DNA from: Trichosphaerium sp. ATCC 40318
Lineage: Eukaryota; Protista; Tubulinea
DNA length: 64,000 nt
NCBI GenBank assembly: GCA_038496445.1
Contig: JALMLS010000594.1
Coordinates: 1 to 64,000, forward strand
Direction: 5' to 3'
Position 1 is the stretch's first letter. Every line of letters begins with the position of its first letter. Below are positions 34,792 through 38,396 of the stretch, piece by piece. The notes under the pieces are model-generated. The model saw only the letters and a program-made list of their open reading frames with translations, had not been told where the DNA came from and made no database searches. Made by a program: the position numbers and the translations under genes.

Positions 34792-35166
34792 TAAATTATG
34801 CACGTGACGCATTCAGTGTTGAACAACTTTGCACCATGTCTTTTTACCCTTTTCTTGTTGTCCGTGCTGTTTGGAGTGGTACACTTGGTTTTCCGTATCT
34901 ACAACGTACACATGATCAAGTGATTCCAAGTTATAGTACAACTTAATATACCTTCTATGTGAAGTGCATTAACAATGTGTGCTTAATAGTGTTTTATGAG
35001 AAGCAAGTTTTTCCAATTGGCATGCTTACAAGATTAGGAGACTAACACAATACCTTTGAATACATGAGTATTATTGATAGTGTGTCTTGTGAGCCGAACT
35101 TAACCTGGCATTAATAAGTTCCTTAGAGGAACTCAGCTTAAGTTTATTCAATGCGCATTAATTACA

Positions 35167-35559
35167 ATGGCCAAGGCTGTAATAACGCTTAATAAACTGC
35201 AAGATTGTCCGTATGCGAAGGATAAGAACCACAGAGGTTGTTGGGGTAAAACATCGTTTGGTACTCTTAGATACAATGGAAAGTCTGTAATTTGCAACGC
35301 CAGTGGCAATAGGCGCTATAAGATGGACGTAACAGTAAATTCGAGCAACTGTTATGTAAATAAACGCTCAAACGAGTTCAATGTTGACATGCCTTACGCT
35401 GTTGGTCCAGTAGAGTGGAAAACAGGCGTATACATACACTCTTACCCCTTACAGTGCTCAGCAGGATGTATACACCTTAAATCTTCAGATGCAAGGCAAT
35501 TTCATGATTGGGTAGCTTCTAAACCAAAAGTAAGAATTGTCGTTTCAAGCACGTGGTAA
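35167..35559 (+). CDS. Stand-alone L,D-transpeptidase (YkuD-fold) catalytic domain protein, intronless
   Basis: MPYAV...GVYIH...SAGCIHL...DA..F.DWV....RIVV matches the YkuD His/Cys catalytic signature. Confidence 0.75.
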   Translation: MAKAVITLNKLQDCPYAKDKNHRGCWGKTSFGTLRYNGKSVICNASGNRRYKMDVTVNSSNCYVNKRSNEFNVDMPYAVGPVEWKTGVYIHSYPLQCSAGCIHLKSSDARQFHDWVASKPKVRIVVSSTW

Positions 35560-35855
35560 TATGTAAAAAATAAAAATCAGTTGAACAAAAAAAGTAGTTA
35601 GTTACATACTTGACGACTAAATTAGTGTCAGAATAAGAACGTCTGGCTATTGTTAGTGTGGGAGGTGTAGCTAACAGTAACACCAAAAGGCGGTCGACCA
35701 CTTCCGTACATAGATGTTAAACGACTAGTACCTCGTGACTTCAAATGACTTAATGTAGACTCTAGCATACCTTAAATACATATAGCAAGTACAGCACTTT
35801 TTGAAACATACAAAAACAATGCTGATTGCAGAAAAATATATTGTTTATTTTAATC

Positions 35856-38396
35856 TTAAAATGTAGATTTTGAGTTTGTGATAGGACACCATCGTGATAC
35901 TTCCAAGTATTGAAGTAACAGAGCCATTGCTTTTTCACTTTTCATTCTTCTTAAAGCCATCATAGCATATGCTTGAACATATCTATTACTATCCATGAGC
36001 CTCTCACAAAGTCCTTTGGCACAACTATCAGGTATCCAAGGACCTATACGAGCTAAACTCAATGCAGCTGTAAACCGAATTTGATCATCTGTATCAACAA
36101 GTCGCTCCATCAGTGGAGCAGTAACATTCTACAAATAAAGTTTAAAACTGTTTTTTTAATACCTTTGCTTACCTCTGCTGTCTTTTCTGTCGATGCTATA
36201 ATGCCCATGGCTTCTGTAATATATAATCTCGTTACTGGGTCTCTAATGGGTACGTAAGACACGGTGTTATATGGTAAAGACAGCGCCTAATGTACCCATG
36301 TTTTGATAGTTTTATAAGTCTAGGTAGCGCAGATATAGCTTCTTTACCATATTCTGTTAAAATGTAGATAACGTGTATCCTTGCCACTGGTTTCAAGAGT
36401 AAATTTAGAAGCTCTTTCATAATAAGACTTGGTCTTGGGTGTGCCATTAATCCCATAGTAGCGCAAATACGCATTTCTAGATCTATTTTTCGGAATCAAA
36501 ATTAGTGCTTGTAGCAAGATAAACTAGTTATAAAACGATAACACAATGTCAGAAGCCTACACCACAAGTATATGGAGAATTGCGGCGCTCATAAATACTT
36601 GGAATAAAAAAGCCAACTGCAAAAACAAGAAAGAAAGAAAAGATTAAGAAAATATAGACTAAAAAAGGTTTTAGGGCGAACATAAAAATTACCTTTGCTG
36701 GTTAGTAATGAAAGTAATTCACTTGATTCTTCTCTCAGCCCGAGACTATATGATGCATGATATCTTTCAGCTTCAACAGGACCACTCAATGCTTCTAATA
36801 GCTCGTTTTTCTTTGCATCTGTCAAGGTACTTGTTGGACAGTTCCGGCAAGATCCACGCAACCAAAGCCATAAGTAGTATGCTGCAGGTGCTACCATACG
36901 CTCCTAAAATGATCCATTAACAAAAACGTCTTCATCAGCGAGTAGTGATGAAGAAAGATGAGAACGGTTTAATGAGGACTAGTTTGTGAATCAAAGTTTG
37001 AAGCTTGTTTTTTGATCCAGTATCTCGGGTTACGTATTACTCTATTAAAATCTGTCTGGTACGCACTCTGTATAGTTTTGGTGTATATGTCCACTTATCT
37101 GACTTAGTATTCCACGTAGGTTCTGTAGGTTCTTCCATTCTCATAAACTCAAATTTAAACATATATCTTGTAGAAGTGCTTATATTAGCTGATCCTCGGT
37201 GTATAATATCAAAGTGTATGAAGACTAACACGTGTTTAGTTAATATTTTAGTGTTGCTTAAAAACGTTATGCGATTGTACCAACGCTTCCAGCAGGTACT
37301 GTAACAAGTAGGTCTTGATCCGCTTTACTCTAATAAATGTGGTAAGTCTTTTTCAAAGTTTGTTTGCACTTGTTTTGCATTGTGTTTGAGGTGCTAGTGT
37401 ACCTTACTATAAGCATTTGGTAGTTTTCCTTTATAGTATTTTGGATCTAAACTAAAGTACTGGGTACATGGTTTCAAACCGGTCGGCCCATTACTCTTAT
37501 TTACAGCTAGAAAAAGTAAGAAAAAATATGGATATTACTAGCGAAGGAGCGCTCTCATACCTTGTGGGTAGTACATGCCCATTACATAACGCAACGAATT
37601 ATACCTAATTGGCCTGCGGTATCCCCAGTAACTATCCTAAAAACTATCAATCAAGGTACGCTCACGGTCCAAACAAACAAAAAGCAAAACAATAAACTTA
37701 GTAAAACAACATACACGATGCCAGCGTTGTGAGTTGAAACCAGGAGAAGGATTATGACAATGACGGTGAGGATGCTTAATTCAATTGCAGTTAGCACTCG
37801 TAAATATGACGAGGAAATGCGTAAATGCGTGTACCATTTCATAGTTTTTTCCAACTAGACTTTGTAAAGCGCCTTTCACTACTGGATCTTCGTATACCTT
37901 TAACACGTGAGACGAATTTAATTGCACGTGATGCATTTAAACATACTTGATTAAGCATAGGAAGCGCAGGTAGAATATTATTGCCAGGGTTACCACTCCG
38001 TACCTCAAACACTGAATTTTATGTCAGTAAAAACGTAAACTGTTGGCCTTCTAGTGAGCTTTCTAAAAGCGCGTAAATACGCTTACCTTTGCCTGTTTCT
38101 TCGTATAGCGTATCATGAAAGCTTTTGGGGAGCTTTGGTTGTACTATAAGGTATCCTTGAACGAGAAACTGTTGAACTTGCTCGTCAGTGAGTAAAATAG
38201 GCTCAGGAACGTCAGGAAGTATATTAGTTCCTTAAATTAGTCGTTTAGATACAAGTACAAGTTACTTTGACATACCAACGAATGATTTATCTTTACATCG
38301 AGCCTGTGGGGTCCCTATTCTGCCTTTATTGGCTTTTCCTCCATCTTTGTTTACTCCCTTCTGTCTTAGGTGTCTGGGAATGTATTGAGCGCTCAT
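35856..38396 (-). CDS. Phytanoyl-CoA dioxygenase (PhyH)-family 2OG-Fe(II) oxygenase fused to HEAT repeats
   Basis: LLTDEQVQQFLVQGYL, WH-D iron ligand split by an intron, YYPQ..NGPT, HFDIIHRGSAN...RYMFKF; C-terminal HEAT repeats (RFTAALSLARIG, YVQAYAMMALRRM). Confidence 0.85.

Follow-up and report, generated by a model that had tools for sequence, protein, structure and literature searches.

A stand-alone, minimal YkuD-domain gene in the nuclear genome of an amoeba-like protist encodes a candidate peptidoglycan-directed L,D-peptidase

The window (the whole stretch of Trichosphaerium sp. DNA analysed here, 64,000 nt long, with a GC content of 37%) contains, 35 kb from the start of a contig that is at least 64 kb long, an intronless open reading frame that runs from an ATG to a TAA codon on the forward strand (35167-35559) and encodes a protein of 130 aa, just as the earlier note had described it. 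ORFs of such length are not expected by chance, since 16 ATG-initiated ORFs of at least 130 aa are present in the window versus 0.2 in its shuffled versions. No in-frame ATG is found upstream of the start codon before the stop at 35101, and no joint to an upstream exon is seen in the RNA-derived contigs, the 5' coverage of which is thin. A 13-codon upstream ORF (35151-35192, forward strand), which begins with an out-of-frame ATG at 35151, overlaps the YkuD start codon; the 5'-most RNA contig starts at 35161, so the mRNA may exclude this upstream ORF. The features of the locus are as follows:

35167-35559, forward strand: coding sequence (stop codon included) of the stand-alone YkuD-fold protein, based on the ORF list, the Pfam YkuD match and the structural model (pLDDT 94.1, Z 13.4).
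35161-35580, forward strand: minimum extent of the transcript, from unspliced RNA-derived contigs of four runs (X5, 35161-35328; X1, 35209-35544; X2, 35308-35481; X4, 35218-35580).
35569-35574, forward strand: AATAAA, a likely polyadenylation signal read from the sequence, 10 nt past the stop codon; the longest RNA-derived contig ends at 35580.
35855-38000, reverse strand: spliced host gene with HEAT repeats (HEAT_2, E 3e-8), with eleven CT..AC joints (GT..AG on the minus strand).

The HEAT-repeat gene lies about 300 bp downstream of the YkuD ORF on the opposite strand, and its transcripts skip eleven introns of 44-210 nt with GT..AG ends; such a spliced gene adjoining the ORF marks the contig as eukaryotic. 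One of its junctions differs by run (36242>36296 in X2 versus 36237>36296 plus five letters in X5). The flanking genes had earlier been taken for intron-rich Rho and PhyH genes. A spliced eukaryotic neighbour is indeed present, and its HEAT repeats were confirmed, but the two names did not hold up in searches with single exons: Rho found no match among the flank exons, and PhyH reached only E 0.24, with PF05721 unmatched there.

Protein, Pfam and family-profile searches all identify the YkuD gene as single copy in the 70.3-Mb, 642-contig assembly. The composition of the ORF (GC 41%, GC3 38%) is largely host-like, with GC3 slightly above that of the host ORFs nearby (19-34%); the homologous gene of Bremerella stands at GC 54% and GC3 67%. 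The only COX1-like sequence of the assembly (G000:C309:3755-4807) contains 20 in-frame stops, as would a nuclear copy in decay, and the assembly seems to lack the mitochondrial genome.

Expression, which the earlier note had proposed as a check, is evident from RNA-derived contigs covering the YkuD ORF in four runs, which carry two organism labels and belong to three studies. These runs must be derived from RNA, because the same runs show the introns of the HEAT-repeat gene skipped; the contigs themselves carry neither strand nor poly(A)-tail information. The intergenic DNA on either side of the YkuD ORF is not covered by RNA-derived contigs in any of the four runs. Run X4 carries a divergent YkuD transcript, with 15 differences from the window over 363 positions (4.1%). 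Among these, 11 changes are listed, 7 synonymous and 4 non-synonymous, and the amino-acid changes R50S, E70Q and S106H all fall at variable positions, leaving the conserved residues untouched. The resulting dN/dS of about 0.14 (Fisher p 0.002) on a 4%-diverged transcript also speaks for purifying selection, the lack of which was to have counted against the gene. In the same run, exons of the neighbouring gene (35855-37897) differ from the window by about 1-2%, a sample too small for a contrast of rates. The YkuD gene is host-integrated, expressed and under purifying selection, and the ORF can be taken as a true gene in the nuclear genome of an amoeba-like protist.

The Pfam YkuD profile (PF03734) matches residues 84-124 of the protein with 26.3 bits, above the curated cut-off of 23.4 (E 1.2e-5). 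The match spans only positions 96-146 of the profile, corresponding to the C-terminal third of the protein, and the same partial match recurs in ten relatives. Protein language-model features likewise point to YkuD clusters (score 0.94; 184 of 256 features shared). NCBIfam, PHROGs and PADLOC returned no match to the protein, and a PDB sequence search with the single protein gave chance matches only. An AlphaFold2 model computed from a 42-sequence alignment has a mean pLDDT of 94.1 and a pTM of 0.88, with no segment below 50. Against the PDB, the top 50 Foldseek matches of this model are all L,D-transpeptidases. In an all-against-all structure search, the best match is the L,D-transpeptidase (Ldt) of M. 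smegmatis (4xvo; Z 13.4, rmsd 1.9 Å over 101 residues, model residues 1-128), and LdtMt2 (residues 252-381) scores Z 12.9. The top 20 matches, which include the hydrolases Csd6, Pgp2 and DpaA, are all YkuD-fold enzymes (Z 13.4 to 5.9), the first unrelated fold following at Z 4.9. To judge from the model, the protein consists, over all of its 130 aa, of a single minimal YkuD catalytic domain. In agreement with the earlier note, Pfam finds neither LysM nor any other domain besides YkuD, and the protein has no signal peptide: its polar N-terminus makes up the first strand of the modelled fold. In the alignments, this N-terminus matches the start of the Pirellulaceae proteins described below position by position, and likewise the point just past the signal peptides of foraminiferal paralogues.

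Three segments of the coding sequence are of importance for the active site and for the subfamily:

35206-35247, forward strand: inserted loop, residues 14-27, with Cys14 and Cys25 (CP...GCWG), which, in the alignments, the window protein shares only with the Pirellulaceae proteins and P0048.
35437-35439, forward strand: codon of His91, the predicted catalytic histidine, invariant in 42 members and aligned to the catalytic His of mycobacterial Ldts.
35458-35475, forward strand: codons of Ser98-Ala-Gly-Cys101-Ile-His103, the active-site motif with the predicted nucleophile Cys101, aligned to the SHGC of Ldts.

The motif on which the assignment had originally been based is present as quoted, MPYAV being followed by GVYIH, six residues (SYPLQC) and SAGCIHL. 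When the family profile is compared with solved Ldts, the positions of their catalytic His and of the Cys in SHGC are taken by His91 and Cys101, respectively; together with a Pfam score above the cut-off and a confident model, this bears out the proposed YkuD fold with a His/Cys pair. His91, Gly100 and Cys101 show no variation across 42 relatives; Gly32, Tyr51, Asp54, Ser68, Met75, Gly87, His103, Ala109 and Arg123 are nearly invariant, as is Ser98 in a 21-sequence alignment. The canonical pattern, His-x(15-18)-[ST]-His-Gly-Cys-[IVL]-[Arg/Asn], is nevertheless departed from: Ala replaces the second His, His103 stands in place of Arg/Asn, and the His91-Cys101 spacer is 9 residues long versus 17 in the aligned mycobacterial Ldt. 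The SAGC motif and the short spacer are thus real, but they are traits of the whole subfamily and not, as first thought, the oddity of one copy. Since the departures are a subfamily trait, sequence comparison marks the protein as a divergent YkuD member rather than a non-member; its substrate specificity may differ, as the motif departs from that of classical Ldts. The inserted loop is the least confident part of the model (block means 82-88). Four cysteines, Cys14, Cys25, Cys62 and Cys97 (35206-35457), are kept in the clade formed by the window protein, Pirellulaceae and P0048, the last of them lying four residues ahead of the nucleophile; a metal site, disulfides or a redox switch are all possible.

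An exhaustive phmmer search of 1.84 billion representatives returned 46 proteins at E ≤0.001, a few repetitive proteins matched in many short stretches being left out of the family; a word-index protein search with the single sequence gave no match. One homologue aligns over its full length with 63% identity (E 4e-50). These relatives are mostly bacterial and devoid of signal peptides, and many possess an N-terminal region of about 110 aa that is not recognised. In P0019, an N-terminal eCIS core/PVC-metallopeptidase domain is fused to the subfamily domain, and in P0038 the fusion partner is an endolysin-like Amidase_2 domain. A profile search added chiefly eukaryotic transcripts, from the foraminifera Nonionella, Bolivina, Globobulimina and Elphidium and from MMETSP and EukProt entries. 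The gene is not a lone oddity among eukaryotes, since it belongs to a eukaryote-rich clade with at least five foraminiferal genera and other protist transcripts. The forms encoded by the added transcripts vary: some have a signal peptide, some combine it with a membrane anchor, and others lack both; the window protein, P0061, the 110-aa foraminiferal forms and the Pirellulaceae proteins all have no signal peptide.

The nearest relatives (53-63% identity over the full length) come from Bremerella volcania, two Pirellula/Pirellulaceae MAGs and one unclassified MAG; two metagenome contigs, on which integrase, IS66 and phage genes lie alongside, carry fragments of further ones. All of these homologues reside in clearly bacterial contexts. 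The gene is rare in bacteria, with 3 loci among about 186,000 species genomes and an occurrence in 2 of the 401 sampled Pirellulaceae genomes. No conserved neighbour or immunity gene was found in the Pirellulaceae loci. A longer N-terminus in Bremerella and a MAG was considered and rejected, the upstream open frames being mutually dissimilar. No relative was recovered from viral contigs in a pattern scan derived from alignment A3, fold matches in BFVD were only phage DUF5675 or L,D-peptidase-like proteins, with no giant-virus protein among them, and a scan of metagenomes added two distant relatives only.

In the maximum-likelihood tree, with bacterial toxin-type proteins as the outgroup, Pirellulaceae are monophyletic (98/94) and form a clade with the window protein and the metagenome protein P0048 (98/99), marked by the loop insertion at residues 14-27. 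Further out branch the eukaryotic transcript P0061 (99/95), a foraminifera-rich clade, P0018 and a marine eukaryotic metatranscript. The window protein is sister to the monophyletic Pirellulaceae group and not nested within it, the next outgroups being eukaryotic. A single eukaryotic clade, a grouping chosen after the tree had been seen, is rejected by the AU test (log-likelihood difference 51.9, p 4.8e-5), which implies at least two inter-domain transfers. The horizontal acquisition suggested earlier fits these results in part: the gene shares its ancestry with bacterial genes, but it does not nest in Pirellulaceae, whose genes, on this tree, appear to nest among eukaryotic ones. On this topology, a protist-to-Pirellulaceae transfer or a shared donor outside the sampling would be slightly preferable to a simple transfer from planctomycete to amoeba. 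Among enzymes of the L,D-transpeptidase fold, these proteins make up a clade rich in eukaryotes that is related to toxin-type domains of bacteria and has a rare Pirellulaceae gene interleaved; our full-text literature searches, which were of limited coverage, turned up no mention of the fold in protists, foraminifera included.

The contigs of P0048 (L003) and P0018 (L022) have a low coding density and may also be eukaryotic. P0018 is a Cys-rich YkuD protein with a Pro/Thr/Ser linker, and a clear signal peptide lies upstream of it in another frame (L022, 1590-1802 and 1511-2515); the gene has probably been called wrongly and may be a eukaryotic one containing an intron. Member P0005, sister to an MMETSP transcript in the tree, is encoded on a gene-dense contig with 25% GC (L004, 1-3944) beside two Endonuclease V genes and a D123 gene; this contig could belong to an AT-rich protist or to a giant virus. 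In Bradyrhizobium (L017, a 573-kb replicon, and L018; 1843-10714), a 237-aa member lies 44 nt downstream of two giant ORFs of 2,704 aa and at least 2,787 aa without Pfam domains, near DUF4365, transposases and conjugation genes, an arrangement that may represent a large toxin or delivery locus.

Comparison with characterised systems helps to narrow down what the protein may do. Classical Ldts (LdtMt2, 4xvo of M. smegmatis and Ldtfm of E. faecium) possess the same fold over 130 aa (Z 11-13.4, rmsd 1.9-2.2 Å), with catalytic His and Cys residues equivalent to His91 and Cys101. Unlike them, the window protein is encoded in a eukaryote and has no signal peptide, lipobox, or Ig-like or PG-binding domain, and its active site shows a spacer of 9 rather than 15-17 residues and SAGC-I-His rather than SHGC-x-Asn/Arg. 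Csd6, Pgp2 and DpaA share the fold as well (Z 8.8-9.8) and show that it can serve as an L,D-carboxypeptidase or amidase instead of a cross-linker; these are, however, periplasmic, multi-domain proteins with 11-18% identity to the window protein. Tlde1, to which kinship had been proposed, has in common a YkuD-like fold and a Cys/His mechanism acting on stem peptides. The relationship is not supported beyond that: the protein has no Pfam DUF2778 match at E up to 10, and Tlde1a (7uma) scores Z 6.9 (rmsd 3.5 Å), in contrast to Z 13 for classical Ldts. The window protein is a member of a small, divergent YkuD subfamily distinct from Tlde1.

L,D-peptidase toxin domains have been described in polymorphic and PVC toxins by Zhang et al. 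(PMC3482391), and the eCIS protein EAT6, composed of DUF4157 and an L,D-transpeptidase domain, killed E. coli but not yeast (PMC8213781). EAT6 belongs to the same architecture class as the bacterial relative P0019, the two being likened here by architecture. Whereas the Tox-LD-peptidase and EAT6 toxins are tied to delivery, the window gene stands alone between host genes, with no delivery domain (eCIS core, RHS or PAAR) and no neighbouring immunity gene. By analogy, the protein would nonetheless work like the toxin-type L,D-peptidases. In its history, the gene resembles the domesticated amidase effectors of ticks (Dae2) and the NlpC/P60 proteins of Trichomonas, which follow the same pattern of a bacterial wall enzyme kept and expressed by a eukaryote that meets bacteria. 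Those enzymes have a papain-like amidase fold, unlike the YkuD fold found here, and the secretion signal typical of Dae-like proteins is missing from the window protein.

Amidases and lysozymes are examples of bacterial cell-wall hydrolases already known to have been retained by eukaryotes. We consider it probable that the window enzyme is a peptidoglycan-directed, most likely hydrolytic, L,D-peptidase that shares its ancestry with bacterial genes through inter-domain transfer. The peptidoglycan target is suggested by the characterised enzymes of the fold, whose targets are all the L,D bond of stem peptides or proteins linked at that site, by the amidase and toxin-delivery fusions in the subfamily, by the secreted foraminiferal paralogues and by a wall-degrading gene set in the same genome (see below). 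Following the precedent of the family, His91 would activate Cys101, and the latter would attack the bond from the L-centre to D-Ala, or the 3-3 cross-link, of peptidoglycan stem peptides. The thioester would then be resolved, most likely by water, in which case an L,D-carboxypeptidase or endopeptidase, and not an enzyme of wall building, is to be expected. The lack of a signal peptide is an argument against a secreted or phagosomal weapon and leads us to propose action in the cytosol, either on wall peptides imported from digested bacteria or on bacteria reaching that compartment; we think this about twice as probable as delivery to the phagosome by an unrecognised route. The enzyme may have an antibacterial role, as the earlier note had suggested. 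Should the enzyme indeed cut stem peptides, it would represent a new tool with which bacterivorous protists digest or sense bacterial walls, and a second bacterial weapon domain taken over by eukaryotes, alongside the amidase effectors.

Other explanations have to be weighed against such an L,D-peptidase. The fold might have been repurposed, yielding a cytosolic Cys/His enzyme that cleaves or ligates a non-peptidoglycan substrate, such as a host or microbial peptide or protein. This would agree with the missing signal peptide, shared with P0061, the 110-aa foraminiferal forms and the Pirellulaceae proteins, with the altered substrate-facing motif (SAGC-I-His versus SHGC-I-Arg/Asn, with a shorter spacer) and with a eukaryote-rich clade that is long-lived and under purifying selection. 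We nevertheless regard repurposing as unlikely, given that all the characterised YkuD-fold enzymes among the structure matches act on peptidoglycan or its attachments, that members of the subfamily are fused to a peptidoglycan amidase, and that the foraminiferal paralogues which are secreted or anchored in membranes are in keeping with a bacterial target outside the cell. A broader version of the same idea, which we hold to be distinctly improbable, is that the mini-YkuD clade is a resident eukaryotic family passed from protists to Pirellulaceae, its members without signal peptides acting in the cytosol on a non-wall substrate, for example in cysteine-based peptide cleavage or ligation. If true, the passage from protist to planctomycete would be among the rarer eukaryote-to-bacterium transfers.

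It is also very unlikely, in our view, that an acquired gene is being expressed yet is dispensable and has no role in the host. Although the gene is single copy and intronless, belongs to a very patchy family and has a GC3 slightly above that of host ORFs, its composition is largely host-like, it is transcribed in four runs, and the dN/dS of 0.14 and the intact catalytic residues in two diverged lineages are hard to reconcile with dispensability. Even less credit can be given to a cross-linking transpeptidase that builds or remodels the wall of a resident bacterial symbiont. Some insect hosts do encode wall enzymes for their symbionts, a precedent for such a role, and the closest structures are those of cross-linking Ldts. 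On the other hand, neither a symbiont nor a targeting sequence is in evidence, a periplasmic wall would be out of reach for a cytosolic enzyme, and the anchorless forms of 110-130 aa as well as the toxin-type bacterial fusions fit hydrolases better. Finally, bacterial contamination or an assembly chimera, which the bacterial nature of the nearest relatives might suggest, can be practically dismissed, as the gene lies deep within a contig of at least 64 kb among spliced genes, its GC and GC3 depart from those of Bremerella, its product is at most 63% identical to any bacterial protein, a eukaryotic poly(A) signal follows the stop codon, and transcript assemblies under two organism labels carry it.

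The wall-degrading gene set of the same genome, to which we referred in favour of a peptidoglycan-directed L,D-peptidase, consists of an Amidase_2 sequence (G000:C8:101519-101965), several sequences of GH24 phage-type lysozymes (C112:106402-106919 and five more loci) and a sequence of an S66 LdcA-like L,D-carboxypeptidase that is split by an intron (C282:28944-29254). Together, these sequences look like a toolkit for the breakdown of bacterial walls.
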